DNA of 64,000 nt from Klebsormidium nitens (GCA_000708835.1 DF237057.1:62001-126000); one strand, 5' to 3'; positions 418 through 48,251 are shown, counted from the first letter of the stretch. Notes: generated by a model from the letters alone, not told the origin. A program made the numbers and translations.

Positions 418-3003
418 GAAAAGAACTGTAGTTCGCTAATAGATCAGGCAATCATCCCAACGGGATTTGAAGCAGGACCTGGAGAACCCATACAGCGGCC
501 ACAGCGCATGTACCAGGTGGGATGTGATTCCGCTTTAAACTTAATTCGTCCTGAAAGCTACAAGGATACTAGTTTATTTATCAAGTGTTCTTTACTTTGC
601 TTCTCTTGTGCTCTCGTGAGTAGTTTGATGTCTAGTTTCATGCAAGTTTCCGCTGCATCCAATCTGGTGCTTTGAAAAACATACTGAGTATCTTGGAGAT
701 ATCTTTCGTCCGCTTGTGTGAAGTGCAGAGGTTGGATTCTTAGACATCTTCAATGATGTTCCAGTGCTTTGCATTTCAACAGCGCATAGAGATTTCTGCA
801 CTCCAGCTTGGCAAAGTGGCTAGAAAACTCTGCATCAAACTAAGCCTGTAACGCAATTTTGAGATACCAAGCGAATAAAATTGTCATCTCTGAGTAATCA
901 CAAGGAGAAGTTGGATACCATGAAAGCTAACTTCAGATTGCTGATGTCCCAGGGATGGCTGAACCCAAGAAGATCTCCAGCTGGTTAGCAGCAGCGAAGG
1001 CAGCTCCGTCCAAATCGCCGACGCCGTCCCCGCCTAATCACGTCTCCATGGTGAGGGTTTCTCGGCTTCACTAAGCATCTTGCTGTCAATCTTGCTGTCT
1101 ACTTGGTTGATTTGATCCATAAAATGGAAGTGACAATTAAGTCTGCTTGAGTGAAAAGATATTGGACATGCAGAGGTTCTGTGTCTCCCTCGCTTTTCTT
1201 TTCAGCCACAATGGATAAAGCATGTATGGGAGTGCCTGACGACAAAGGTATTGGAGCAAACCAAAACACTCTTCTTAGAATGGCTAGTCAGAAATTTCTC
1301 TTTACTGCTCATGGACTATAGAGAATGGCAGGATGCCCATTCTGTGACTCACTTCTTTTGATAGGCTGTTGCGTTGCTTCCATGCGAATCCCTGCAGCAT
1401 AATGATAACCTAATAACCTAATGTAACCAGGACTCTCTCATCTTCGTCACAGCTTGCGGCTTTGTGCAACACTGAGGTCAGCAAGGACGCCGATGGTTTT
1501 GTGACGGTGGTCCGAGCTAGGAAGTCTCGGTCCCCCCAGAAAGGGAGCGAGCCTCCTCTGCCACAGGGGGACGAGTTCCCTGCTTTGAAGAGTCCCCCAA
1601 AGAGGGGCCAGCCATTAGAAGGGCCTGTAAAGACCAGGAAGGAGGGGAAGAGGAAGGACGGGCATAAGGACAGAGCAGAGAACAAGCGAGAGGAGAAAGA
1701 AGCCGGCAGATTGGGAGAGTCGACTGGCATCATGGAGAAAAATGCTGGTGCAGAGGCACCGGACCTCAACCGAGGGGAGGGGAGCAGGATCAACACTCAG
1801 GAAAGACTCCAGGCCCCGACAGGCCCTCTGGAGAAAGAGCAAATGGGGAGCAATGGAAAGAGCAGAGAAGGGGGTCTCACAAAGGCGATCAGCGAGGCGG
1901 GCAAGTTGAGGGTGCCCCCCTCGCGTGAGGTCACTGCCGAGTTCGACGGCCTCATGACCGAGCTCCTGAGTGGCCTGCGACTACAAACGTCAGGACAGGG
2001 CCTCTCCCCGCCTGTCACGGCAAGCCCACAAACGCAGGGCCCTGTCCAGGCAACCTGCGCGCCCCCCCAGAACAAGGTGGTGCTCTCCCCCCAGGTGCAA
2101 AAGGCCCTTGCAGCGCCCCCTAAAAACGGCCCAGTAAACCTCACTGAGAGGGCGCCCCCCCTGTCACGGAACCTGTTCCCAAACCCCCCATCGGTTACTA
2201 GAACCGCCCCCCAAACCCTGGTTACTGGTCCTCGGCCGCCCACTCCCAAGATCACAAAAGTCAAACCCCCTGAGCCAATTCTCACCCCTGCCAGGGGCCC
2301 GAATCCGAACTCTTCCGAGCAATCTTCCACCCCCCAAACCAGGGAACTGTCGTTCTTCGCAGTCCCTCCAAAGACCCCAAACCCTTACTCTCCCAAGTCC
2401 GTGCTCGACCTTTCCAGCCCCGAGGGATCCCCCATGCCACGTCAGCAGACCCCGGCCAATCAGACGCCGCCAGCTAAGCGCTCGGCGTACCGGCCTGCGA
2501 TGCACGCTGACCCGAAGAAGGTCATTGGGCGGAAGGCCGAGGCCCAGAGCCCCTCGCCGGAGGTGGTGACGTCATCTCCGTTCAGCTACACGCTGTGGGC
2601 CCCTCCGCTGACATCAGCGAGACTCTCCTCGGCGGAGGCAGGTGTCCTGCGAGAGTCTCCCTGCAACGTGGTTAAGGAGGTTAACCCAGCGAAGGGCAGC
2701 CGGTTAGGGGCGTGGTTAGGGAAAGGGTCGTCCGGTTTGCTGGAAACGGAGAGCGAGTTTCACCAGGCCCTGATTCGGGGGGTGTTTACACAGCCTACGC
2801 CTTTCCAGCAGCCCACAGGTGTGCATACGGGGCATGAGGACGACGAGTTGTGTTGCAAGATCTGCTTTGAGAGGGAGAGCAACTCAACGTACCTGTGTGG
2901 GCACACTTTGTGCAACGACTGTGCAGAATACATTCACGTACATAAGAAGATCTGCCCGTTCTGCAGTAAGCCGATAGAAAGTGTGCTTAGAATGTTCACC
3001 TAA
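418..3003 (+). CDS. Pro/Ser-rich low-complexity protein with C-terminal RING-HC (C3HC4) finger, putative E3 ligase; 5' end uncertain
   Basis: Exon 1453-3003 follows the acceptor tcgtcacag and ends CKICFERESNSTYLCGHTLCNDCAEYIHVHKKICPFCSKPIESVLRMFT. Phase-compatible upstream exons: 937-1050 (IADVPGMAEPKK...HVSM|gtgagg; ATG at 955) and possibly 418-516 (ttcag|EKNC...RMYQ|gtggga). Confidence 0.78.
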
Positions 3004-3674: not shown

Positions 3675-6600
3675 TCATTTCTGATCTAGGCTGAGAGCCC
3701 GTTCCAGTTGATTCAATTCGGCTTTTGTTCGCAATGCGCTCTGCAGTTGCCGCACCCGAGAGAGCCACGTGGCAGCGTTCTCGCCGTCCACTGCGACCCA
3801 AGGAACGGCTGCGAATGCCGGCTGCTCCCACCACTCGTGAATGAGCCGCCCCACCCTGCAGATGACGCAACGCTGACGTCAGCTCGCACGGGCGGAAAAG
3901 GTATGCTTCCGGAGCTTTCGACGCTGCTTACGGGACGCTGAAGGATCTCTCCGTAAGGGCCGCGTAACCTATAAAAGCGAACGTCGCGGAACAGCGATAC
4001 AATGATCCTCTCAGATTGTTCCACGTAGAAGTACCAGTGAGCTCTCTTTTAGTGATCGAAACACTCCACGCATCTTCGTCGGAACACGTACGACGGCCGG
4101 CCACCGAACCTCACCTTTCCGAGTCCTCAATCGCAAACCGCGCCTCGTCCACCGCCGCCCGGATCCGCGTCAGCGTCTCTGACGTCATCTCCTCGTCTTG
4201 CGCCGCGGCTGCTGCTGCCACGTCCTCCACCGCGTTCAGAAGCTCCGGCCGCGCGTCGCTCGCTTCGTCCACCGCAAAACGGCCGTCGGAAACGAGCGCG
4301 CTCAAAGTTTCTGCTTCCTGCAGGATTTGTTAAGAAGGGAATTAAGGGAACTGGAGTTGAAAGCGAGCCGAAAGTGGCGTTCAGTGGCGTCTATCATGGC
4401 GTTGTTTCGTCCACAGCAAACGATTATAGGAGCCAAAAGCGCTCAGAATTTTCGCTTCCTGCACTAATCAGAAATAGGATGTTATAGATGATCCTTGTCA
4501 AAGGCGGGCAGAAGTTTGGTATTCGATGGCGTTTATTGTGGCATGTCTGTGTTCTTTCAGAAGCTCCGGCCGGGCGTCGCTCGCTTCGTCCACAGCAAAT
4601 CGGCCGTCAGACACAAGGGCGCTCAGAGTTTCTGCTTCCTGCATCATTCGGAAAAAGATGGATGTTGAGATCCTTTCTGGCGGTTTTGAACCGTTTGATG
4701 AGCTCCAAACGAGCTTCGAGAGACAAAGCGGCCGTCGGAGACAAGCGCGCTCAGAGTTTCCGCTTCCTGCACAGTCAAAGAAAGCAGAATGATATGAAAG
4801 ACGGATTTAAGAGATGCGTCTCAAGTGCGGGCAGCAATCAGGTGGCGTTTCTGTGTTTCTTCATGAGCTCCGGCCGGGCGTCGCTCGCTTCCGAACCGGC
4901 NNNNNNNNNNNNNNNNNNNNNNNNNNNNNNNNNNNNNNNNNNNNNNNNNNNNNNNNNNNNNNNNNNNNNNNNNNNNNNNNNNNNNNNNNNNNNNNNNNNN
5001 NNNNNNNNNNNNNNNNNNNNNNNNNNNNNNNNNNNNNNNNNNNNNNNNNNNNNNNNNNNNNNNNNNNNNNNNNNNNNNNNNNNNNNNNNNNNNNNNNNNN
5101 NNNNNNNNNNNNNNNNNNNNNNNNNNNNNNNNNNNNNNNNNNNNNNNNNNNNNNNNNNNNNNNNNNNNNNNNNNNNNNNNNNNNNNNNNNNNNNNNNNNN
5201 NNNNNNNNNNNNNNNNNNNNNNNNNNNNNNNNNNNNNNNNNNNNNNNNNNNNNNNNNNNNNNNNNNNNNNNNNNNNNNNNNNNNNNNNNNNNNNNNNNNN
5301 NNNNNNNNNNNNNNNNNNNNNNNNNNNNNNNNNNNNNNNNNNNNNNNNNNNNNNNNNNNNNNNNNNNNNNNNNNNNNNNNNNNNNNNNNNNNNNNNNNNN
5401 NNNNNNNNNNNNGGCCATCGGAAATAAGAGCGCTCAACGCTTTGGCTTCCTGCGGGATGTGTAAAGAAGGGATTCATGAAGATTATTGTCACATGCGAAC
5501 CGAAGTGTGGCGTTTTTCATGGCGTTGTTTCATGACCGCCGGCCGGGCTTCGTCCACGGCAAAGCGGCCGACGGAAACAAGCGCGGTCAAGGTTTCGGCT
5601 TCCTGCAAAATCAGAAAAAGACAAAATAGATCTCAATGGAAGGGATTGAAGTGATGCGTGTCAAGTGCGGGCAGGAATTTAGTACCGCTTCTTTGTTGAT
5701 TCATGAGGTCCGGCCAAACGTCCCCCACACGTCGCTCGCTTCGTCCACGGAGAAACGGCCGTCAAAAGAAGCGCGCTCAGAGTTTTCGCTTCCTGCATCA
5801 GTCGAAAAAGGGGAGTTGAAAACCATCCTTGGCAAAGGCGGGCAAGAGTGTCGCATTTAGTGGCGTTTATTGCGGCGTTTCTGTGTTTATTCGTGAGCTC
5901 CAGCCGGCCGTCGCTCGCTTCGTCCACGAAAAACGGCCGTCAGGAACAAGCGCGCTCAAGGTTTCTGCTTCCTGCAAGGAGGGACGACCGAGGGTCGTAA
6001 GCAGCCGTTAGACGAGAGCGCGCACAGGGCCTCTCGTGAATATATCGTCAAGAGTCAAGACTACCTATAAAATGGTTTCAGATAGTTGGCCCGGTTAGCG
6101 GATAGAGACAGCTGTGGGGCGGATAGCAGGCTTTGTAAGGGCTGAATTATTAGTAGACAGGTTCTTAATGTGGAAAAGCACTTGAGACTGGGCGTGAGAG
6201 AAGCCCCCTTTTTCCTCTTACTGGCCTTGCTCAATGAATGCAATGGTGCAAACTTTTCGCCCCAACCCTAATCTACTCGAGTGAGGAAACAGGACTCTAC
6301 TCAGGGGTTTGTACTTTCCAGGTTTAGCTTAAGCTAAAAATAGAATGAATTTCAGTCTGACCTGAAGCTGCTTCGCGACCGCCGAGATCACCCCCGCCAC
6401 CGACGCATACTCCGGGTGACAAAACGCGAGGCCCTGTAAAACGCGCGGCAGCGCCTTGTCCAGAGTGTGCCCAGACTGGCCACCGGCCGCCGCAAGGCCT
6501 CGGGTCCGCATGGGCGACCCTGCTGACGTGGCAGCCGACGATTGGAGGGCCGACTGGTGGTGCCGTGCGGTGCGCGCGCGCTGGAGGGCGGAGAGCGCGG

Positions 6601-9600: not shown

Positions 9601-12171
9601 TCCGCTCACCTTAATCTTTCCGCATCCCCCCGAATGTCGATCCGCTCCGTCTCGCCTTTCAGGGCTTCCGCTGCGGCGCTCGTACAACTCGCAACCGCCC
9701 GTAGCAACTCCTGCGGCGCCCGAAGCAGCTCCGATAGCTTATCCAACATTCCCGGCGGGTAATCCCCCAGCACATCTCGTATGACGCCTCCCAGAAAGAC
9801 CTCACTGCCAAGATACGTCACGGCCCGCTCCGAAACCTCTTCCCGGCCTGTTGCTTGCGCGTCCCGCTCGTCGGCCCCCCAGGGGGATCCCCCTCCGGTG
9901 TCGTCAAACTCACTGTGGCCTTCTTGCCATCCGGGTGACCTCGGCGAAGCGGACCCGAAAGCACCGTCCGTGTCGCGCGTTTGAGCGTCCGAGGTGTTGG
10001 TACGAGCGTCCGAATCGGTCGGATCCAGGTCCGCATCGTCCGAAAGTCGGAGCTCCGGAACGCTCTCCGCGATCCGCTTCTCCAAGAGACCGGCCAAAGC
10101 TTCGCAGGCCTCCCGCACCTGGCGCTCGGTCGCAGTTTCCAAAAGCGGGGCTCCGGACGCCAAGTTCGGGTCCGAACTCGGCTTGCCGGACACTGAAACT
10201 GTGCTATCACTTTGAACCGTGCTCGCATGACCCGCATTTTCAGGCACCCTAGCGCTGACACTGGTTGAGCTCGATCTGGAAGAGGACTGGGTCGGTTTAT
10301 AATCTCCGGGCGTTTCGGATACCTCCGCTCGTTTCACCGTCGAGCTCAGGGCTAACGAATCGCGCACCGCCACCTGGCGCTCAAAGACCTGCTGCGGGGC
10401 CGCCTGTGCGGCGCTCTGTTTGGCGGTCCGAGCGTGGGCGATGTGGACGTCCAAACGCTGCTTGCACGTCCGGAAAAGGGCAACAGCGTCCGACATCTGG
10501 CGCTGGTAGGATTCCAGAGCGACGATCCGAAACTCCTGGTCGCTCCGCTCCATTGCATCCCTGTGAGGCCAGAAGACGTGACGCTTAAGTTCGGATATCG
10601 TTGGATAAGAGCAACCAGGAAGTTTTGAACAGAGTCATTAGGAGAGGGTGAGAGAACCACTTTGACAGGATCAATAAGCCAGTCTTTCAGAAACAGGCAT
10701 CACAGTCAAGCATGCTTCCAGCAACAACAATGTCTAACCTACGAAGCCGCAGATTACAGCTTCCAAGATCGTTTCAGTCACACCTCCAACAGGCTCACGA
10801 TGGGGAAATCTGGTTTGAAAGCAAGCTGTGAAGTATCATCGAGATGCCCCAAGACGATTGTTCAGCAATACTGCCGCCATCGCAAATCCGATGAGGCTTC
10901 TTTATCTGCAACTGTTTGGTTCTGAAAAGGGAGCAGAATCACGTCTCATCAGCAAAGCTTGATCCACTCGGACTCACGAGATTGACTCTGCGTAACTCAC
11001 CTGTCACGCTGCAACTCCTCTCTTGCGCCGTCCTCCATCTGCTGCTCCAACGAGCGTTCCAAATCTGCCACCTGATCTTGCAACCGGGCCACCTGCCCAC
11101 AATTTGAACAGGGCGTCAGACCACTTATGCTACTGAATAACTATGCCCGGCTTGTTGAGTACGCGGCCTTTAGTAATAATATGCAGTCAGGCACACCCCC
11201 GGAGTGATAGTTTTGGACTACACCTGTTGGCACCGGGACTACACTTTTTGGAATGCGCATCCGCTATGTATTTCATTCATCACAAGCCCCATTCTAAAGT
11301 TTAGCACCTTTAAAAGGTTTGGGACTCTTCACCTCTGCTTGGGCTGTGGCCCTTTGTAGAAGCGCCTCTTCTCTGCCGGTCTCCCCGGGTTTGTCTGTCC
11401 ATTGCCCGTCCAGTGTCTCCCCTGTCCAGCCTTCATGCCGCCCTTTCCTGTCCCCCTGGCCATGTACAATCAGGTTTCGCCGAATGTCCCGCACAGTCTT
11501 CTCAGATCGCACCTGCAGATGATTGATCGGGTGAGTTGATATTGACTTCCGAGGGGTTTGTTTGCTTAGTTGGTAAGTTGAAGCACGTTGGTTAGGGCCA
11601 TGTTTCGGCTCCCACTGTGTAAACTTCAGAGACTTCTTCTTCTGGAAAAATGGTAGGGCAATGTTGGTCAATTCCTGCCACATTGCAACACGATCTGAGC
11701 TCGGACGCCTGATAAGGATCATACTTGCAAGGCAAAGGAGACCAAACGTTTTAGGAACCATTATGCAAGACCTCTGCTCTTTTGGAGCAGCTGTTCAGAG
11801 CAAGCACTGAAGAATTACGAAGACGAATCACGATCTCAGATTGCGAGGAGTAAATCAGCTTCCCGGATGCTTCATGTCAACAAAGTTGTTCCGGCTGGTA
11901 AAATCCAGTGGCCACAATTGGATTTGTGGACACCAGCAAGAGATTGAACGACGAGGACAACAGAGTTTATGCGAGACAATGGAGCATAGCTTCTCACCCG
12001 TTCTACAAGAAACTTCCACACGGGAGCCAGGTTGCCCCGACATATCTTCCGGAACGAATCGGCATCCAGCGGAAAGTCGTCGGCGGTCCGATCCGGAGGA
12101 CGATACTCCATCTCCCCAGTCACCCACTCTAGTATACTCTCCGGGTGTGGGTGAGCAGCAGAAGCTGCCAT
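3675..12171 (-). CDS. AUG5: AUGMIN subunit 5 (HAUS5 family), about 10 exons
   Basis: Exons approx. 12171-11998, 11512-11334, 11092-11001, 10560-9610, 9070-8833, 8004-7793, 7260-7073, 6657-6362, 4317-4115, 3855-3675. All have GT-AG boundaries and the phases checked were consistent. Peptides match plant AUG5 as recalled: [89 protein letters not shown]. Confidence 0.93.
4240..5975 (-). repeat. Tandem array of degenerate copies of an AUG5 acceptor plus exon start (at least 8 besides the real exon; period about 130-190 bp), interrupted by a gap
   Basis: Recurrent tgcag|GAAGC(A/G/C)...AGCGCG...GACGGCCG...GGACGAAGCGAGCGACG starting near 4317 (functional copy), 4457, 4638, 4766, 5449, 5602, 5792 and 5971, plus a partial copy at about 4866-4900. 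Confidence 0.9.
4901..5412. other. Assembly gap (N run) within the AUG5 intronic repeat array
   Basis: Run of N flanked on both sides by repeat units. Confidence 0.99.
8090..8775 (-). repeat. Degenerate copies of AUG5 exon boundaries in one intron: two acceptor/exon-start copies and two exon-end copies
   Basis: ctgcag|CTTC(A/G)(G/A)GT(G/C)TGGGCCC near 8330 and 8165 mimic the real exon start at 8004 (LQVWAQE). ggaggcgagcg...gggacgcaggaaac at about 8690-8770 and 8555-8610 mimic the exon end at 8833. Confidence 0.8.
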
Positions 12172-16824: not shown

Positions 16825-19800
16825 ATTCCCTCCTTCTTATCACTCAGCGGCCCCTTTGCAAGGGCGACGACCTCTCCAAGCAGCGGTGCGGTGTGTGCGG
16901 GACAACCAACACGCCCTGCTGGCGTAAGGGGCCCGCCGGCCCAAAAACGCTGTGCAATCGCTGCGGGGTACATTGGTACCAGAACAAGGACCGCTGGGAT
17001 CTGATTGTGGAGGAGCTGCGAGCAACTAGAATGGACGACACCGTCGAGCAGGCGAGCGCGCCGACGCGGACGGTCATCAAGAAGAAGGTGAGGGGGTGTG
17101 CTCTTGATGATGGACTTGTTTGGAAGTACAAACCAGTTGTGAAGCGGAGCGGTGTTTACTTTTCCATGGTGGTTTATTTCAACTGCTTGAAAGCCTCAAG
17201 GACTCATTTCATTGACTTTGCGGTCTAGATGTTATGTGATCAGCTACAGGCCATTTTGCGTGCTTGATGAACAATAGACTCATTGTTCAGCAGCTTGCTT
17301 AGAAGGCATTGCATGCAACATATGCGACACGAGTACAAAGCAAACACTTCGAAGCAATGCTGGCTATGTTGCTGCATCTTCTGGGCTCTTTTCTTTCTAT
17401 GGTGCTTCTCTTTTCTTTGGCCCCCCAGCTTGACTGCAATATTGCAAATAAGGTCGTCAACCATGAGGAAAGATGAGCGGGCAGGGACGAAGACTGGAAC
17501 CAGGATTGAAGCCAGTTTTATACCCTCTCTGACGTTCTCTACTTTCTTCCCCATCCCTGCAAGTCATAAGCAGGCAGCTAAACCAAAAATACAACTGAAG
17601 AAGGACGGAAATAGAAGAAGAAGCGCTGTTTTTCTGTTCTATCTTGAAAATCTTTACACTTCTCTCCAGGTCGACCCCCGCAGCGCGGAGGCCCACCCCG
17701 CCGTCCCCGACTCCCAGCGCTGCGTCAAGTCCAACGGGCGCGGCTGGCGCTGCAGTCAGCGCAAGGTCTCCGGCTACAGCTACTGCGCGCACCACCAACG
17801 CAACTGGGACGGCCACGAGAAGCAGTGGCGCAAGGCCTTCCCGAACCTGGTCTACCCGCGCAAGTCCAAGAAGGCGGCGGTTGTTGCGGACGGGGGCGTC
17901 GCGGTCCAGAAAGACGGGACCGTCCGGAAACGGGAGCGGAAGCCGAAGCACCCCGGAGGGGGGGTTGCACTGCCCGAAAAGTGGGGGCGGAGCTCGAACG
18001 TGCACCGGACGCAATTCGGACGCGACTCGGACGGCAGCTCCGAGCCGGACTACGTTGACTCGCGGCTCGGGAAGGTCCGGGCGAAGTCGTACGGGGTCCG
18101 GAGTCCGAGAGGCCCTGCGAAGGAGGGGAGCGGCTCCATGATGCACTTGGTGCTGCCCTCGGAGACGGACGAGCTCGGCGGAATGAGGCCTACGTACATG
18201 TCGGACGATGACGACAGCCAGCTGTATCACGGGACACAGCTGTCGGAGGAACCGGGGGAGTCGTCGGAGAGTGCGAAGGAGGTCAGGAGTCCCAACCAGA
18301 ACCGGGCAGGTGAGGAGACGGGGGTTGGTTTAGGGCAGTAAAGAAGTTGCTGTCGGAGATTGGTCTCGTTTTATACCTCAGATCAGAGGAGGAGTCGGGA
18401 TTCTTACAACGCGCATGTCTGTCTTCGTGATCGGATCCGAGGGCAAAAAGGTTCTCGACACTGTCTTTGCAGATCTTTCAAACATCTGTGTTCCACTCTC
18501 GGAAACTTGGTTGAGACGTCCTTGTTGTCAGAGTGCATAGGGCCGATCTTATTGTCACTCTTGTCGCAAATCTGTGTCTTGTCCCTGCCATTCGAGCTTT
18601 TTCCCCATGTCTTGGGTGTGATTCGACGGCCTTTCTGAGTCCTTCCAAGGATCACGAGAAACTTCATTGCGCCAATGGTAGCATACACTGCAGCCCTTCC
18701 TTTTTGTTTCAAACAGATCCCAATGCCTTCCTTCTGGCGAAGGTCCGCCTTCAGTTTTTTTCAACACTAACGAGAGCTTCTTTAACTGAGCATCTCCTTA
18801 CTTTGCAGATCTTCAGCCCAAGCAAGAGCCATCTATCCGCTCTGAGGTCACCACCCTCTCCCCCCCCCTCAAGGCCAGCCATCCCGAACCCCCTACCGAG
18901 AACCAGCGGTGCGTTATGAAGGGAGGCACCGGTTGGCAGTGCCCACGCCCCCGGCAAAGTGGCCTTCGCCACTGCCAATATCACACCGAAGCGCGGCGCG
19001 CAAAAGCGGCGTTGCAAAACGGGTTAGTGGGTAAACAAAACGGGTCAGGCGCGGGCGATGACGATACGCTGAGCAGCATGGAAATCCTGATGCGGCTGCA
19101 GCTGAAGAGGAAGCGCTCCGAAGAGGAGAACGAGACCCGGCGGGACGGGTTAGCGGGGTCCGGGTTAGGCCTAACCTGGAAAACGAAGATGCGGCGACGG
19201 CCGTTCAGCAGCCGGGGGGGCCCCGTGGCGGACGTGAAACAGGGGTCGGATCTGAGCCAGGACAGCCCCCGGCCGAAGAGGGAGATCGACCCCCCCGAAA
19301 CGGAGTGGGGGGGTCGTCGCGAGGAGGAGGACGACGCGGCGTATCTAGGCGTGGAGGAATTGCGGAGGCGCCTGGAGCAAAGCCGGGGGGCGGTCGCGGC
19401 GCAGCAGGAGAGGAACGAGGCCGCTGGCCGAGAGCTTATGAAGGCCAGGGAGGGGCGGCTTATGGCGGAAAAGCGGTTGGAGGAGGCGAGAAGGGAGGCG
19501 GAGGGGGGGGAGGATGCGGCCGCAGTTGAGAAGCTGAGGAAGGCGGTGCAGGCGGAGCGGGCGGTTGGCTGCGCGCTGCAACCGGAGGTGAGCGTCGATC
19601 CTTAATGTTACCGTTTCGTTCTTGTGCTGTAATTGTTTGGGAGTTATTTCAGGTTTTCGTACGTTGTTCATCAGCGAAGGTGGGAGATGTGTTTCACAGG
19701 TTACACCCGCGAGGCCAGGGCTACCTGCCGATTGACCATGCCCCTTTTCTCGTCCATTTTTTTACTACTTCTGCAATCCACCCCGCCCGATATCTGTTTG

Positions 19801-21030
19801 ATCTGTACCTCTTGCTAGAGGATGCTGTGCGTTTTGTACACCCTCAGGCCAGAGGACCACTTTCGAGACTCTACACCAGGCAACATGCCACTCTTATTCA
19901 AGGAATCGAACGAATCACACTCGCTGACAAGGCTCGTCGTCGTTCAATTTCGCAGGCCCTCAAACTTGCGGACCAGTTCCAGCACCAGGCGCTACTGCTG
20001 GCGAAGCAGGACGCCCATCTGACCGACCTCCGGACGTCCGCAGAGGAGCTCCGTGGGGAGGTGGCGGTGCTCACGGCTGAGAAGAAGGAGCTGCAAGTGA
20101 GAAACTCTCGCATCTAGTTGTCAATCACGAAGGCAATGTGACGGTTGGAAAATCCTCGGGGGCTGGAAGTGGAGTGGCTTCAAGGAGCTGCGTCTGAAGA
20201 GTTTTTCATTCGCCCGTAATCCTTGTGTGCAACAGCAACGATTTTGGCTTGGGGCTCGAAACCAGGCCTTAGCGATTGTTTTTAAAAGCCCAAATAAGTA
20301 CTAGATCAGTTTTTCTGGATGGAAGAGCGGGCTGAACGGTTCAACGCACTCCTGCCTTTGTCGATGTCGAGGAGCTAATCAATAGAGACGTCTCTATGAA
20401 GGTTTCTGAGACTGCGCTGCTGCTCTGAGTTGTTCGAGGACAGGGGAATTGAGAGGTCGGAAAGGAGCTCAGCTGCTCTCAGAAGGTCACGGATACCAGG
20501 TCGTTAGTACATCAGAGCTCCTAACAATACCGCCAGTCCCAGGTCAAACAAAAGAATGGGTCCGCTGCCGTTCTCGCTACTCTAGTTCTGACGTACGTCT
20601 GTCATCATTGCAGGCCCAGCTGGCACTGCTCCAGAAGGCGAACGCGTGCACCCTGTGCGTCTCTGGCAAGCCCGCCAGCGCCGCGCTCATGCCATGCGGC
20701 CACTTGTACTGTGGCACATGCACCGCCGAGTTGCTCCCACGAGCGAACGGCGTTTCCGCACGCAACTTGACCCCGGCCATGGATGCTCCCAAGACCGAGG
20801 GGCCGTCGGATGTTGTATCGGCAACGACCACCGAGACTGGTGTTAAGGTTATTGTAGAAAGCGAGGGACAGGTGGTAGAAAATGAGGGATTGGTGAGAAC
20901 GTCTAGGTGTCCCTGCTGCTCGGTCGAGGTGCAGGGACGGCTAGTCGTTCAGAAGCCGGCGCCGGTGGACGAGGAGATGGACGGCGCCGTTAGCTTGCTG
21001 GGGCTGCTCACTAGTGAGAGCTCCCAATGA
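16825..21030 (+). CDS. GATA zinc finger - WRC - WRC - coiled coil - RING-HC protein; true start further upstream (possibly the ATG at 13830)
   Basis: Phase-consistent exons 16825-17087, 17670-18309, 18809-19587, 19956-20096, 20614-21030. GATA: [27 protein letters not shown] (C-x2-C-x18-C-x2-C). WRC1: [29 protein letters not shown]2: [26 protein letters not shown] (both C-x9-C-x10-C-x2-H). RING: CTLC...[10 protein letters not shown]...CPCC. Confidence 0.85.
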
Positions 21031-22515: not shown

Positions 22516-25500
22516 TCAGGACGTCCTTTCAAGCAAAGTTGCCCAAAGTATGATACCGATCAGAGTCACTGCCGGGGGCGCCCATGCACCAACGCTTGGG
22601 GCAAGCGCTCCTTGTTGGCTCAACCGTGACAAGCCCTTAGCAGCGAGAGTGTACGGAAGCAGTAACAGGGCGGCCTTTTTGAAAGGATCGCTTCGGCTAT
22701 TCCTCGGAGATGAGCTCAATGTTGACATCGCGCCCACCTGAAAAAGATGTAAAACGCAGAAATACTCAAACTTACGATATGGGCCGTGAAAACGCATGGC
22801 CTTCAAATGCGTCGAAGGCGGGCGTACACAGATGCATCGGCAGATGGTGATAGGGAAGCCCCTGAGCGGCTGCTCTCATCGCCAGCTATGCACCAGCCAA
22901 AAATCTGATCGAGACGAAAACGACCACTCGGGGTCGATAGCTACTTGGATAGTCCCAAATGAGCGTCGCTCTCAAGGCACACGAACAACCAAAAAAGGCG
23001 CAATAATCGATGACTTGCAGCGAGCGTTGATCGAAGTCTGCCACTCGGTCCTTTAGGCAAAAGCCGCAAGCCTTCAAACTATAACTGTCGCACAGATAGG
23101 AACTCTGGCTTTCACAAGGCACAACGGCTTCGGCACACAAAAGCTCTGCCACACCGCAACAGTGTACACGTGGCGGTAAGTCTAGCTGCCGACGCTCCTT
23201 TCGCTTCGCTTACCATCGCGTAAATGGCACACGTCAGCACGGATGCATCCCGTTGACTTAATAGCCACCTCGCCTTCCAAGCTGGGCTCCCGGGTCCGCA
23301 TTCTGCTCCAGTTTTCCTCTCTCTTTCGATAACTCTGGGCAGAAGAAAACATGGATACTATTGAAGGGTTTCAGGATCAAGAACCGGGTTTCCTACTTCA
23401 AAACTTACCAGAATTGCAAGAGATGGAGCATGGAAAGAGAGCTCCAAGTTCGGAACACTTTGTCGCACAGACTTCTGATCAAAACGGATCCTCTGTTAGG
23501 GGTCAAGGAGATGCGTCTTTTGACGGGCTGCTGAAAAGCTGCTAACTCCCTTGACACCATCGTGAAGCTTATTGAGCGGTCGCCAACAATGAATGCCAGA
23601 GCGCCTCTTTGCCTCTAAAGCCAGATCTCAGAAAATAAATCTCAGTTGCTCAGAACAATCCAACCTCAGGCCTCTTACACGGCGATCTAGGCCGTTATCG
23701 CTAGCTGACTATGGCAAAAAAATATCGCCTCGGCCACTTATTGGGAGCGTCTGAAAGGTAAGCGCAGAATGGTGTAGCGGGATGAATGCTGACCTCTGTA
23801 TCTCCCCTCGGGTTTGATCGTGCAGGTCTGCAGTGGCTCGCACAGCGGCTTTCGCGACGTTGGGCATCGGGACGCTTAGGCTTTGCATCTGCTAAAAGGG
23901 GGAAACGCAGTGATCACCGGAAACGCTAGACAAAGTACTTGCTTTCAAGTTTTCGGGCGTCAAGGCGCGCAGGCTTATGCATCTGTAAGGAACAGAGAAA
24001 CGCAGCAATCAGTGGAAACGCTTGACGAAGTACTCGCTATCGCCACATTGGACATCGGGACGGTTCGGCGCCGCATTTATTGATATAGAAAAACGTACTT
24101 TTCAACGGAGAAAACTTGAGAAGTTACCAGCTTTCGCTACGTTAGGCAGCGGAACGCTTCTGTGACACAAGTATTGAGAAACGCAGCGATCAATGGAGCA
24201 GGGCAGAGAGTTGCTCTCATCTTCTCTTTCTATGTCTCTTCTTTCCGTGCTTCGGCATTCGTTTGCCGCTACTCCCCGTCTACTCCAAAACCTTCTCAGA
24301 TGCGACGCTAGAGATAAACCTATCTCTTGACTGATGAGTAACGAGGAGAGAGTGGAACCCGGACTTCGCAGTAGTAATCAAGAAGCGAGTCGCTAATATT
24401 ATTTTGGCTTGAGGGCAGAACTGCTTTACGTCACTTACTTCGTTTCGTCATCAGAAGTGCACGCTCCACAGTAATTTCGTAAGCGCCAGCCTGAACTGTG
24501 TAATATTCAATGAACGAGGGCAGAATATCTGCGGACTGGAGTTATCACTTAGGAACCGGATGTTGCAAAGGCAATTCCAGGCCAGCTGAAGCGTCCCGAT
24601 AGATTGCGATCTAATGTTTCACCTGGAGCGTTGACTTGGATTCTCCCGTGCGATCCATGTGTAGGAGCGTGGCGTCGTGGAATCTCCACACCTTCGCGGC
24701 CCAGTCCCATGCGCAGCTGCCAGCTGTCAGCACCTGATTCGCCGAAGCAGGGCTCGATCAGACGTGAAACATGTGTCACCGCAAATCCAGGGTCCATCAT
24801 CCTGACAGTACTGACATATATACGTGTATTGGTTTACTCTGCAATGGTTAGCATGTTTCCGAAACGGAGAGGAAGTTATGAAATGCTGAGTGACTTGCGA
24901 GCATCCTTTCGCAAGGTCAAGGGCCGGAAACCAGGGTTCTTCCACTTTACAGTTATGCTAGTCCTAGGAGGATTAAGGGAACGCAGAAACGCACTCGTCT
25001 CTGAGAATATAGCAAGTCGATGCTGCTACCAAAATCGACGCTCACACAATGACAATCCAGTCGAGAGGGACTGGATTGGAAGACAGCCTCTGAAGTGAAG
25101 AAGACCTTGAAGCGCCTCAAGACGCTGCATGAAATGGACAAAGACGGAACACACTCGATCACAGCAAGTCATAGGACAAACCCGGTAGCGCAAGAACGAT
25201 GAATGTCCGGCAAACAAAATGTGGAGGATAGACTGTTGCTCAGCTGATCATTACGATGGAACGCACTGGAAAACGAACGGCCTAGCGGCAGGACGATGAA
25301 TTGGAACGGAGTGATATCGGAAGCGCACCCGATGCACCTCTCCGTCGGGGCTGCAGTCCAGAACCGTGACGCGTTCCATTCTTCCCCCCTCTAGTTTCTG
25401 CGCGTACCAGACCCGCTGCAGCTGCTTCCCGGCTCGGCCCGCTGCCGGCCCGTACTCGTGATAGATAACGTCATCCCTTGCCTTGAGAGTGTGCAGATCG

Positions 25501-27487
25501 GTGGTGAGCGCAGTCTCTACAAGCTGGTGCGCTCTGCAGAAAGAGTTCACAACGAGCGTGAATGGGGGCAATCTGCATTAGTTGTTGGGGCAAATCGAAC
25601 CGGAGTTGTTGGTGTATGAGCTGGTTGTGAGACAGATGAAGTGATAGATTCGTAGCTGATGTGTTTCCGGCCGATTGGGAGGGGGTGTTAATTTCTGCTG
25701 TGCAAAGAACCGATGGTGGAGAATCAATGCAAGGCTTCTGAGGCTACACCCAAAATGGGGACAAGGTCGGGAACAGAGACTTGTCAGTCCACGCATCAGG
25801 AAACATCGAGGAGCTTCTTGAGATCTGGTTGTATAACGGTTTGTCCAGAACAGCTACTCTTGCCAGTCCAACGAGCTTGATCAAAGCAACTGGACATCCG
25901 ACCAATCAACCCATCGGAGTCCTCCCATGAAGACGCTTCCTTCTTCAGAGAAGCTCTATATCAGAACCCTTGTAACCAGTGCACCGCTAACCTCGTGCTG
26001 CTGACCGGTATCAATACCTCGTTAACCCCCAGGGTTAGCAGCCCCGCCAGTGTCGCGAGCAGCAGAGGGGCCATCAGCAAGCGCGCGTTTGACACTCCCG
26101 CAGATGCGAGCGCTCCGAGCTCCCCCCTTTCCTGGAGGCTCCCTAACCCAAAAAGGACTCCGGAGAGCGTAGCGAGTGGGAGGGCGAGGGATAGAAAACG
26201 CGGGGCTTGGAGTAGGGCGGCGCCGAAAGCTACTCTCAGGGGGAGTCCTGAAGATGGAGCATAAGGGAAGCGTTAGAAGTGATGGTTGAAATGCATGGAG
26301 ATTTGCGTTCTGTAGGACAAGGGTTTAATGGTGAAGAAAAGCTCAGGGGTGTGGATAGAACAGAAGTGTTGGAGCAGGCACTTCCAGTTCCTCTTGGGGT
26401 GAATTCTGGACAGGGAGTTCTAGCTCCAGATGGAGAGGTATGATTGTGACATCGAAGTGGGTGGAGTAAGAAACACTGCATACTCAGGGGCAAGCTGACA
26501 ATCTGAGCACCGTACGAAAATTTTGTCCAGGATGCAGGTGTCTGCTCCGATTGAAATGGCAGGGTATGTCGCTGGAGTGAATGGATGGCATTGCCCCGGT
26601 GGCAAAAACTATTAAACTCCTAGGGTAGCGGCGTTAAGCTGCAGTGGTTCCTCTGGATAAACTAGAATGCAGGGCTGACATTGGGCTACAAGAGGGGCAA
26701 TGTGAGCTAGTGTCAGGAAAGGGCAGAAACGAGGGGGGAAATGAGATATAATGTAAGGAGGGGGCAGAACAGAGGGGGCGAAGACCTAGAGTTATGAAAA
26801 GGCAAACAGGAGGAGGAAGAAATGAGATATAATCAGGAGGGGGCAGAAAAGAGGGGACAAATGAGACAGCATCGGGAGAAGGCAGAAAAGAGGGGGAGAA
26901 TGATATAGAACAGGGAGAAGGCAGAAAAAGGGGGAGAATGAGATAGAGACAAAAGGGGACCGAAAATTGCCAAACTCACCAGCACTGACCACCTCTCTGA
27001 TCAGCTCCACAAGCGCTCCAAGCGACATCCCCAGAAAGGCACAGAGCGCCAGCGCCATGACAAAACCCGGAAGCATCGATCGCAAAATGTATTTGTCCAG
27101 AACGCCCCCCAGCCTCAAGCTGGCACCTGCTTTCTCTGCAACTTTAGGAAGATAAGCACTTGTGTCCTTATCTCTTTCGCCCTTTCTTTCTCCTCTTCCC
27201 AGTCTGCCTGAGTCCATCGCTTCTATCCCTATAGAGGCATGATGGCTTGTCAAGCGGCCACAATTGCTCAGAAAGTATTTGTTTGGCCACCATTGCGATT
27301 TGCATTGATCACTGAGCCCCGGTCTTCTTGTGAGCTCCTCAGATTTCCAATAATGGTTTCTCCTGATGCATCGCAGAGGGATCAAAGATAGTGCATTGTT
27401 GGCAGAAAATGAACGGCATTGAAATTGCACCACCAGGTTGTGCCGCAAGAAGTCCACCGAAGTCGCATTGAAGCAGGGAGCAGACAT
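22516..27487 (-). CDS. LptF/LptG (YjgP/YjgQ, Ycf84-like) lipopolysaccharide-transport-type permease, nuclear-encoded, probably plastid-targeted
   Basis: Seven exons, 27487-26980, 26247-25992, 25533-25338, 24733-24623, 23888-23794, 23334-23214, 22737-22516, sum to 1509 nt (502 aa) with consistent phases. Motifs: LDKYILRSMLPGFVMALALCAFLGMSLGALVELIREV; LQAPRFLSLALPLATL...GELGALASAGVS; periplasmic-type region VWYAQKLEGGRMERVTVLD...AWDWAAKVWRFHDATL; C-terminal GALAPSVGAWAP. About 130 aa of Ser/Arg-rich N-terminal extension precede the first motif. Confidence 0.87.
26720..26960. repeat. Purine-rich minisatellite (about 40-bp unit, about 6 copies) in intron 1 of the LptF/G-like gene
   Basis: Repeated ggcagaaaagagggg(g)agaatgagata...ggag(a/g)a units. 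Confidence 0.75.
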
Positions 27488-27686: not shown

Positions 27687-27804
27687 AAATTAGCAACATG
27701 TTCCCCCACAAAGTTGCTCCATGAAAGTCCGAGGACTGCTTTCCCCCTTCCTTGCAGAGGAATTCTTGAAGGAGCGGGTTTGTGAGGAGCAGAAGAAGGG
27801 GAGA

Positions 27805-28989
27805 ATGCAAGCCGTCTGCCTCCGCCAAGCAGAAAATGCTGCCCTTATTTTGGTGGAATCTTGGCAGAATGGGGCCCGATGCCACATAGAACCACCTCCG
27901 GTGCTTAGGTTGGATCGATATAGATGTCGCAGGCAATTCACCCTGAAGCAAAGCGCTGTCACACCTCTTTGCTCTTGGAACTTTCTTGCAACACCAAAGC
28001 GTGCCAGGATTGTGAATGTTAGCTGTGAGGGGGGCATTTTGGCAGGCAGGGGAGCAGAGCGAGTTGCTAGGGGCGTGAAGACATGTCTTCGTTGCGGCGT
28101 TAAGTATACTGATGATGAGAATCGGGAAGATGCATGCCGCTTCCATGGACATACTACAGGTATGTATGCAATTAGACGCACATTACTTTTTCCTCCATGT
28201 CCTATACTTTGTCTAGTTGCCCTTGTTCTTAGCAATTAGAGCGTGGCTGTGATTCAATGGCTACTGAGTCTCCAACTCAATGGCATGATAGCTTCTGCCC
28301 AATCTCTCATAAAAGCTGGACTGATTCAGGACCCCGAGACTTTCTGTGAGCAATGGGACGATCGTACCACGTTGGGCCCTGAGCTGATTTTTAAAACCAC
28401 ATTTTCCCTGAAATGACCTGCCCCTGATGCATCAGAAGTTCAGAGACATGATGGTGGAACTTGCCATCATAAGCACTGAGGTGCCCGACCGTTGATCTCA
28501 AAGCACTGTCTAGGGTGATGAGTCTGTTGTAACAGCCATTGATGAAAGTTCCTATGTCAGTTGCATGGATGAAATTTCTATAGACTGTGTTTCAAGTTCT
28601 TCCATTGGAACGCTTACTGTGATGTAGCGCGCAACACATGGTTTGCGTGGTTGGCCCCTCCAAAATCAGTGCCTCAGTTTTGGAGGGACGAAGGGGCAAG
28701 GAAGGCAAGCCTTTCTTTCCAATTGATGGCAGTCTGCTTCCACCTTCTTGCTTCGTCAGGTGATAGAGGCTACTTTGCCCTTGCTCCTCCTCACCAAGGA
28801 GTAGACGGCGATTGGACTGAAGATAGTGGAATCATAGTTTACAGATGGAATCAAGAAGGCAACAGACCAAACTCTGGAAGGAAAAACTGGAAGCGCCGAT
28901 GGACATGTTGCCAAGAATACAAGGAAGATGCTCCGCCGTGTCGAACGGGGCCTCATGTAAGTTATGATGATGGTTACACGATGTTTTGA
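27805..28989 (+). CDS. Conserved plant Cys/His-motif (putative Zn-binding) small protein with a transit-peptide-like N-terminus, 2 exons
   Basis: Exons 27805-28159 and 28760-28989 (phase 1 junction). KTCLRCGVKYTDDENREDACRFHGHTTG/DRGYFALAPPHQGVDGDW...WTCCQEYKEDAPPCRTGPHVSYDDGYTMF resembles an uncharacterised land-plant family as recalled. Confidence 0.82.
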
Positions 28990-47522: not shown

Positions 47523-48251
47523 NNNNNNNNNNNNNNNNNNNNNNNNNNNNNNNNNNNNNNNNNNNNNNNNNNNNNNNNNNNNNNNNNNNNNNNNNNNNNN
47601 NNNNNNNNNNNNNNNNNNNNNNNNNNNNNNNNNNNNNNNNNNNNNNNNNNNNNNNNNNNNNNNNNNNNNNNNNNNNNNNNNNNNNNNNNNNNNNNNNNNN
47701 NNNNNNNNNNNNNNNNNNNNNNNNNNNNNNNNNNNNNNNNNNNNNNNNNNNNNNNNNNNNNNNNNNNNNNNNNNNNNNNNNNNNNNNNNNNNNNNNNNNN
47801 NNNNNNNNNNNNNNNNNNNNNNNNNNNNNNNNNNNNNNNNNNNNNNNNNNNNNNNNNNNNNNNNNNNNNNNNNNNNNNNNNNNNNNNNNNNNNNNNNNNN
47901 NNNNNNNNNNNNNNNNNNNNNNNNNNNNNNNNNNNNNNNNNNNNNNNNNNNNNNNNNNNNNNNNNNNNNNNNNNNNNNNNNNNNNNNNNNNNNNNNNNNN
48001 NNNNNNNNNNNNNNNNNNNNNNNNNNNNNNNNNNNNNNNNNNNNNNNNNNNNNNNNNNNNNNNNNNNNNNNNNNNNNNNNNNNNNNNNNNNNNNNNNNNN
48101 NNNNNNNNNNNNNNNNNNNNNNNNNNNNNNNNNNNNNNNNNNNNNNNNNNNNNNNNNNNNNNNNNNNNNNNNNNNNNNNNNNNNNNNNNNNNNNNNNNNN
48201 NNNNNNNNNNNNNNNNNNNNNNNNNNNNNNNNNNNNNNNNNNNNNNNNNNN
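47523..48251. other. Assembly gap (N run)
   Basis: Run of N between the CMT 5' region and the BSL 3' region. Confidence 0.99.

Follow-up and report, generated by a model that had tools for sequence, protein, structure and literature searches.

A spliced nuclear LptF/LptG-family permease gene of cyanobacterial ancestry in Klebsormidium nitens, with a possible part in lipid export from the plastid

The stretch of the Klebsormidium nitens genome analyzed here is 64,000 nucleotides (nt) long (GCA_000708835.1, DF237057.1:62001-126000; hereafter the window, with positions counted from its first letter). On its minus strand, at 22516-27487, it carries the gene KFL_001080110, which has seven GT-AG exons and six introns. 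The public product of this gene, GAQ82336.1 (P0001; UniProt A0A1Y1I0P2), has 415 amino acids (aa) and is titled “Permease YjgP/YjgQ family protein”, so that both a gene model and an automatic family name are already public. Exon borders were obtained by threading GAQ82336.1 on the minus strand, which gave a single GT-AG solution at each junction with CAG at all acceptors, and the gene region contains no N gaps. An earlier reading of the window, made from the sequence alone (hereafter the sequence-only reading), had described an intact frame of 502 aa in seven exons. The frame was found intact over seven exons, from the ATG at 27487-27485 to the stop codon at 22516-22518, and only the length needed correcting, by a trivial miscount, to 505 aa. 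For comparison we used L002, a 21.8-kb Logan contig from a related Klebsormidium-like genome that is collinear with window positions 38788-24615. The exons encode the following parts of the protein, where TM stands for transmembrane segment:

27218..27487, minus strand: exon 1, upstream part; 90 codons after a conserved ATG, outside the public gene model, presequence-like (transit-peptide-like)
26980..27217, minus strand: exon 1, annotated part; charged linker, start of the LptF/G domain (LDKY motif) and TM1
25992..26247, minus strand: exon 2; TM2, coupling helix with the invariant Glu122 (GAQ82336.1 numbering) and TM3
25329..25533, minus strand: exon 3; end of TM3 and first half of the beta-jellyroll (strands 184-243 in the structural model)
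24623..24733, minus strand: exon 4; central beta-jellyroll strands, 89% DNA identity to contig L002
23794..23888, minus strand: exon 5; final jellyroll strand and the next helix, unique GT-AG threading
23214..23334, minus strand: exon 6; lineage-variable linker and TM4 (Q-R-D-A motif region), unique GT-AG threading
22516..22737, minus strand: exon 7; TM5, TM6 and the stop codon

Exon 1 ends in phase 1 at the donor CTG|GTGAGT. Compared singly with the Pfam family PF03739 (LptF_LptG; cut-off 27.9 bits), exon 2 scored 59.2 bits, and exon 7 scored 23.3 bits over positions 292-350 of the 353 in the profile, slightly under the cut-off. Of the seven exons, five were matched, on the minus strand, by a profile built exclusively from cyanobacteria (80 proteins); these matches were collinear and abutted one another in profile coordinates:

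27118..26978, minus strand: exon 1, cyanobacterial profile 23-69, 19.2 bits
Exon 2, minus strand: cyanobacterial profile 68-154, 49.4 bits
Exon 3, minus strand: cyanobacterial profile 152-220, 33.8 bits
Exon 4, minus strand: cyanobacterial profile 219-257, 17.3 bits
Exon 7, minus strand: cyanobacterial profile 321-391, 16.5 bits

Together, these exon matches go well beyond chance. Taken individually, the upstream part of exon 1 and exons 5 and 6 had no match to PF03739 or to the cyanobacterial profile. Exons 5 and 6 were accepted because of the threading, the motifs they contribute to the orthologue alignment and the intron positions they have in common with the moss Ceratodon. Exon 5 aligns with an L-x-V/L-P-M motif kept in orthologues, and the intron upstream of it is shared with Ceratodon; exon 6 holds an RDA...C..Y motif kept in all orthologues, and here it is the downstream intron that is shared. 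At 26722-26966, within intron 1, a 39-bp unit is repeated in tandem 3-6 times; the repeat is degenerate (67-79% matches) and rich in purines on the plus strand, and it gives rise to a long spurious read-through open reading frame (ORF) after exon 1.

At full length, GAQ82336.1 matched PF03739 with 159.5 bits over profile positions 1-350 of 353. The sequence-only reading had called the protein an LptF/LptG-type permease and had named the lack of a PF03739 hit as an outcome that would speak against this; the match covers the domain end to end. By sequence, the closest solved structures were LptG first, then LptF. An AlphaFold (AF2) model of GAQ82336.1 was built on a 49-sequence alignment comprising streptophyte, plastid, cyanobacterial and other bacterial sequences. 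It reached a mean local confidence (pLDDT) of 88.2 and a predicted TM-score (pTM) of 0.81, and showed helices at residues 39-79, 83-119 and 138-177, six long strands between 184 and 277, and helices at 319-350, 359-383 and 389-414. The predicted fold is that of LptF/G, with six TM helices and a beta-jellyroll inserted between TM3 and TM4. Together with the residues that precede the domain, it bears out the architecture proposed earlier, namely three N-terminal TM segments, a beta-rich region, C-terminal TM segments and an extension. When the model was compared with the Protein Data Bank (PDB) using Foldseek, the top 30 hits were all LptG or LptF chains of LptB2FG(C) complexes (probability 1.0), followed by LptC and the LptD N-terminal domain, matched via the jellyroll. 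In the sequence alignment, Glu122 pairs with Glu88 of LptG, the coupling-helix residue that is seated in the groove of LptB. Only three columns are invariant among the 49 aligned sequences, and these correspond to Glu122, Pro95 and Gly130.

The public gene model appears to begin 90 codons late. An ATG at 27487 lies in frame 270 nt, or 90 codons, ahead of the annotated start at 27217, and the stretch between them is open. The L002 ORF, P0180, has this same Met as its first residue (MSASCF vs MSAPCF) and lacks a Met at the annotated start (E-H-A-G vs M-D-S-G in the public model). DNA similarity to L002 starts exactly at 27487, with no alignment at all in the 300 nt upstream; within the gene, the alignment takes in 97-100% of the exons and 0-36% of the introns. 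In intron 2 (25534-25991), intron positions 209-375, about a third of its length, align to L002 at 68%, and introns 1 and 3 do not align. Over the 90 extra codons the frame is kept relative to L002, with two indels that are both multiples of three. Since the Met, the frame and the onset of similarity are conserved in L002 and the annotated Met is absent there, the start at 27487 appears better supported than the annotated one. The ratio of nonsynonymous to synonymous divergence (dN/dS) from L002 was 0.81 in the extra codons vs 0.33 in the remainder of exon 1, and the first 60 aa contain eight Arg and Lys residues vs four Asp and Glu. In the full 505-aa model, an N-terminal extension of about 128 aa precedes the domain. 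The corresponding length is 80-174 aa in nuclear orthologues vs 3-29 aa in cyanobacterial and plastid-encoded proteins. The extension is conserved, fast-evolving and basic, and from these properties we infer that it behaves like a targeting presequence.

To describe the distribution of the family, the translation of exon 2 (window 25964-26272, minus strand) was searched exhaustively against 1.84 billion representatives. The best match was GAQ82336.1 itself, with 98% identity over the exon. Eight matches had E < 1e-10 and all were examined. Seven belong to streptophyte algae and mosses; the remaining one, P0008, is an 812-aa protein that was matched over two stretches and resembles a bacterial LptF-LptG fusion. 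The algal members come from Mesostigma, Chlorokybus, Chara, Mesotaenium and Closterium, and the moss members from Ceratodon purpureus and Sphagnum balticum; P0006, a fragment from a metagenome, shares 97% identity with the Sphagnum protein. Homologues from liverworts, hornworts and Physcomitrium were not detected in the exhaustive and moss-seeded searches, a result that does not show them to be absent. Word-indexed protein searches returned just 2, 5 and 3 matches and missed known members. Judged by these sequences, a conserved and constrained LptF/G gene is present in mosses and in every sampled streptophyte algal class.

Two of the public algal models are unusually long. In Chara braunii GBG74879.1 (P0004, 1426 aa) the LptF/G domain is joined to a Ty3 capsid-like region, and in Closterium CAI7921612.1 (P0031, 1028 aa) it is joined to PPR repeats; both are probably merged neighbouring genes rather than true fusions. 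A further, unplaced member, P0062, lies on a GC-rich 1.6-kb metagenome contig (L086 759-1529; ENA ERZ18628823). It has a presequence-like N-terminus of 145 aa, rich in Ala, Arg and Pro, followed by an LptF/G domain, and shares 59% identity with the Klebsormidium protein. Its source could be an unsampled green alga, possibly a chlorophyte.

The origin of the gene was then considered. Bacterial loci were collected by scanning 185,579 species genomes with four cyanobacterial seed sequences. The 80 loci returned bear mostly cyanobacterial titles, with several named only “uncultured bacterium” and one labelled Actinomycetota. With GAQ82336.1 at full length, the top prokaryotic scores were obtained by proteins of 376-401 aa; two more of the top prokaryotic proteins are from Synechococcus and Pleurocapsales, and one cluster corresponds to the YjgP/YjgQ protein encoded by the Galdieria plastid. 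The labelled bacterial sample was restricted to cyanobacteria, and the other comparators were mostly unlabelled representatives and metagenome-assembled genomes of Deltaproteobacteria. In the main tree (IQ-TREE, 52 rows, 370 columns, LG+C20+F+G4), all eight sequences from streptophytes group in a single clade with 100/100 support. This clade is nested in a larger one (100/98) in which every labelled member is a cyanobacterium or a Galdieria plastid sequence. Labelled Deltaproteobacteria and other representatives fall outside the larger clade, and a quick tree of 76 rows agrees. Among the streptophytes, the mosses form a pair and the zygnematophytes a group, as expected under vertical descent. 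The endosymbiotic-transfer origin put forward in the sequence-only reading is upheld by this nesting, according to which the gene descends from the lineage of the cyanobacterial endosymbiont.

Several observations mark KFL_001080110 as a genuine nuclear gene that is vertically inherited. Intron position and phase are common to Klebsormidium and Ceratodon for five of the six introns, so the gene had already become nuclear and interrupted in their common ancestor. Neighbouring ORFs encode RING, HAUS5 and WRC/GATA domains. On L003, a Logan contig of 2.6 kb, the orthologue P0002 (600 aa) is encoded without interruption in a single ORF that runs across all the genomic intron positions; this intron-free, zygnematophyte-like contig fits a spliced transcript, in a sample whose library type is not stated. 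The threading, the eukaryotic neighbours and the introns shared with the moss agree with the earlier description of a spliced nuclear gene. In a family that is otherwise bacterial and whose nearest non-eukaryotic matches are cyanobacterial, one might suspect that bacterial DNA contaminated the assembly or that the gene was recently transferred from a bacterium. Such an origin has next to no probability given six spliceosomal introns, a 198-kb scaffold on which the neighbours are eukaryotic, synteny with L002 as a second genome, five intron positions common with a moss and a monophyletic streptophyte clade whose inner order broadly matches the species tree; the intron and synteny data led us to reject it.

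The gene also bears the marks of purifying selection. In exons 2-4 (188 codons), comparison with L002 gave dN 0.012, dS 0.468 and dN/dS 0.03 with zero stops, the ratio being 0.01 in exon 2, 0.03 in exon 3 and 0.04 in exon 4. That no homologue was detected in vascular plants indicates that loss is tolerated and would suit a decaying relic without function. We consider a pseudogene very improbable, since all seven exons keep an intact frame, dN/dS is 0.03 at a dS of 0.47, and the gene has been kept by two classes of mosses and at least five of streptophyte algae; introns, synteny and dN/dS speak for its rejection.

The genes around the locus within the window are the following:

1462-3003, plus strand: RING-finger ORF
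9606-10553, minus strand: exon of HAUS5 (augmin subunit 5)
17283-21030, plus strand: WRC/GATA-type gene with RING-like exons
27721-28239, plus strand: first ORF of a head-to-head neighbour gene, starting about 230 bp from the LptF/G ATG

The LptF/G gene and its head-to-head neighbour may share a bidirectional promoter. The first ORF of the neighbour has a Cys-rich motif, C-L-R-C-G ... C-R-F-H-G-H, and no Pfam match; the block 27785-28989 is conserved, aligning at 70% with the related genome. Scans of the whole window for tRNAs and Rfam families gave zero matches. Low-GC blocks with ORFs in all frames were rejected as features, since they are the N runs at 4901-5412 and 47523-48251, which are assembly gaps.

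The gene environment of the permease was compared among cyanobacteria and in Galdieria. In Stenomitos frigidus the order is an OstA/LptA-like ORF, lptB (TIGR04406, 336.7 bits) and the permease (L005 4995-6182). Among the 73 cyanobacterial loci with sufficient upstream sequence, lptB lies directly upstream on the same strand in 63, and an OstA-like ORF precedes lptB in 57 of those 63. No second permease gene was found within 5 kb. The same pair occurs in the plastid genome of Galdieria partita (AP025529.1; L084 7228-9110), where lptB (TIGR04406, 294.9 bits, cut-off 240) stands immediately before the permease; there the pair sits between infC and cytochrome c genes. Going by this gene order, the LptB-permease pair has persisted in at least one primary plastid. 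A literature search found no paper on a plastid-genome lptB or on the Galdieria pair, and it likewise yielded nothing on ycf84, which the sequence-only reading had named as a glaucophyte plastid gene.

Compared with known systems, the Klebsormidium protein has the whole-length fold, the coupling-helix Glu and the Pfam family of the proteobacterial LptG and LptF subunits (PDB 5X5Y, 5L75, 6MHU, 6MIT, 6MJP and 8FRL), which belong to the type VI ATP-binding cassette (ABC) transporters. It shares only 17-19% identity with them in Foldseek structural alignments. Proteobacterial LptB2FG is an F/G heterodimer, whereas Klebsormidium probably has one permease type acting as a homodimer, and the Klebsormidium gene differs further in being nuclear and intron-bearing, with a presequence-like extension of about 128 aa. 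In a classification of ABC folds, type VI (LptB2FG) is listed in the table of prokaryotic transporters only, and the eukaryotic table contains other types only, as far as these tables go (PMC8386196). The cyanobacterial permease of the OstA-like/lptB/permease operon, such as that of Stenomitos frigidus, represents the direct ancestor group in the tree. It aligns over its full length with the Klebsormidium protein at 25-30% identity, including an E-L-V-R-x-V-x-x-x-G-L-P motif after TM1. The cyanobacterial gene sits in an lptB-linked operon and lacks a presequence, whereas the streptophyte gene is solitary and nuclear and has a diverged linker between the jellyroll and TM4. The permease of the red alga Galdieria (G. 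partita AP025529.1; G. sulphuraria YP_009051151.1) falls in the same cyanobacterial/plastid clade as the streptophyte proteins, but it is organelle-encoded, has neither extension nor introns, and does not group specifically with the streptophyte clade. Arabidopsis TGD1/2/3, a Mla-like ABC importer, together with TGD4/LPTD1, is likewise a machine for envelope lipids that plastids have kept from bacteria. The permease TGD1 is of the MlaE type, with another fold than LptF/G, and TGD imports phosphatidic acid, so that direction and cargo are unlike those of lipopolysaccharide (LPS) export. To our knowledge, Arabidopsis has no LptF/G component.

On this evidence we favor, as reasonably probable, that KFL_001080110 encodes the transmembrane-domain subunit of an LptB2FG-type (type VI) ABC lipid extractor, a heritage of the cyanobacterial plastid ancestor that became nuclear before the streptophyte split and is under strong purifying selection. 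LptD orthologues, TGD4 and LPTD1, sit in the plastid outer envelope of Arabidopsis and represent the LptD-type outer-membrane end of the ancestral Lpt pathway (PMC12096540). The Galdieria plastid pair, the invariant Glu122 and these Arabidopsis barrels suggest that part of a bacterial lipid-export machine is still at work in the plastids of streptophyte algae and mosses. In the mechanism we propose, the N-terminal stretch of about 128 aa would be a transit peptide directing import, and the protein would lie in the plastid inner envelope with its jellyroll in the intermembrane space, topologically the periplasm. It would pair with two LptB-type ATPases, probably as a homodimer because a single permease gene stands beside lptB in the cyanobacterial operons and in the Galdieria plastid. 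Driven by ATP, the TM cavity would close and force a glycolipid out of the outer leaflet and into the jellyroll. Partners with an OstA fold, or LptD-like ones (TGD4/LPTD1-type), would then take the lipid on in the direction of the outer envelope; candidate cargoes would be a molecule resembling lipid A or a glycolipid of the plastid. The complete form of this proposal is more tentative and only possible: a homodimeric LptF/G permease and a nuclear LptB would feed an OstA-fold bridge and TGD4/LPTD1, exporting a lipid A-like glycolipid or a galactolipid from the inner to the outer envelope.

A number of observations weigh against the proposed role as an LptB-driven lipid extractor of the plastid. 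The protein misses both NCBIfam equivalog cut-offs, with 105.7 vs 240 for LptG (TIGR04408) and 82.9 vs 230 for LptF (TIGR04407). The cyanobacterial orthologue is likewise under them (LptG 195.7, LptF 146.4). With both scores below cut-off, a specific assignment to LptF or to LptG was dropped, and on its profile scores the protein is filed in the LptF/LptG family, leaning to LptG and orthologous to neither. Furthermore, where Klebsiella LptG has three lysines, at chain positions 34, 40 and 41, the aligned residues in Klebsormidium are E, V and S. We take these lysines to be contacts for the phosphates of lipid A; in that case the cargo may be something other than classical phosphorylated lipid A, though the argument is weak. 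No vascular-plant homologue was detected in the exhaustive and moss-seeded searches, whose sensitivity is limited, and the function would be dispensable there. As for location, the N-terminus could fit a mitochondrial presequence equally well, so that the extension would not distinguish plastid from mitochondrion. The LpxA-K/KdtA proteins of Arabidopsis are reported to be mitochondrial.

The last two points would suit a protein of the same identity and ancestry that is imported into mitochondria, where it would extract a lipid A-like product of the Lpx pathway from the inner membrane; its basic extension, poor in acidic residues, would serve for either organelle. We judge this improbable, because the family is cyanobacterial and not alphaproteobacterial, its closest eukaryotic relative is plastid-encoded beside lptB, and the known LptD-type barrels of plants are in the plastid outer envelope (PMC12096540). 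It is also unlikely, though slightly less so, that the product is a plastid protein no longer driven by LptB, whether an ATPase-independent scramblase, a lipid-binding scaffold, a thylakoid protein or the partner of another ATPase. The scores under the LptF and LptG equivalog cut-offs and the lineage-variable linker between jellyroll and TM4, with its large inserts, would agree with such a change of role, as would the fact that no partner has so far been identified in any streptophyte, the carrier genomes not having been searched for partners. Such a change is difficult to reconcile with the invariance of the coupling-helix Glu, Gly130 and Pro95, with a dN/dS of 0.01 in exon 2, which encodes the coupling helix, and with the retention of a complete jellyroll modeled at high confidence. 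Our favored reading remains an LptB2FG-type permease of the plastid, and the interpretation given in the sequence-only reading is, as a whole, partly supported.

No paper linking LptF/G to streptophytes, bryophytes, Klebsormidium or plastids was found in a literature search, in which the sole paper holding both YjgP and plastid concerns chlamydial signature proteins. How lipids pass across the two envelope membranes of the plastid is a long-standing question, and so is the role of the plant lipid A-like pathway and of the LptD-like barrels in the outer envelope. LptB2FG, which extracts LPS from the bacterial inner membrane, is regarded as a bacterial machine; the nuclear streptophyte gene and the Galdieria pair give a concrete experimental handle on these questions. 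The nuclear gene appears to be absent from vascular plants, which would mark when, in the evolution of land plants, lipid transport in the envelope changed. If the plastid Lpt bridge is true, it would be the first eukaryotic type VI ABC transporter and the ancestral inner-membrane partner of TGD4/LPTD1, lost towards vascular plants, in which TGD1-3 or similar systems would handle envelope lipid traffic.

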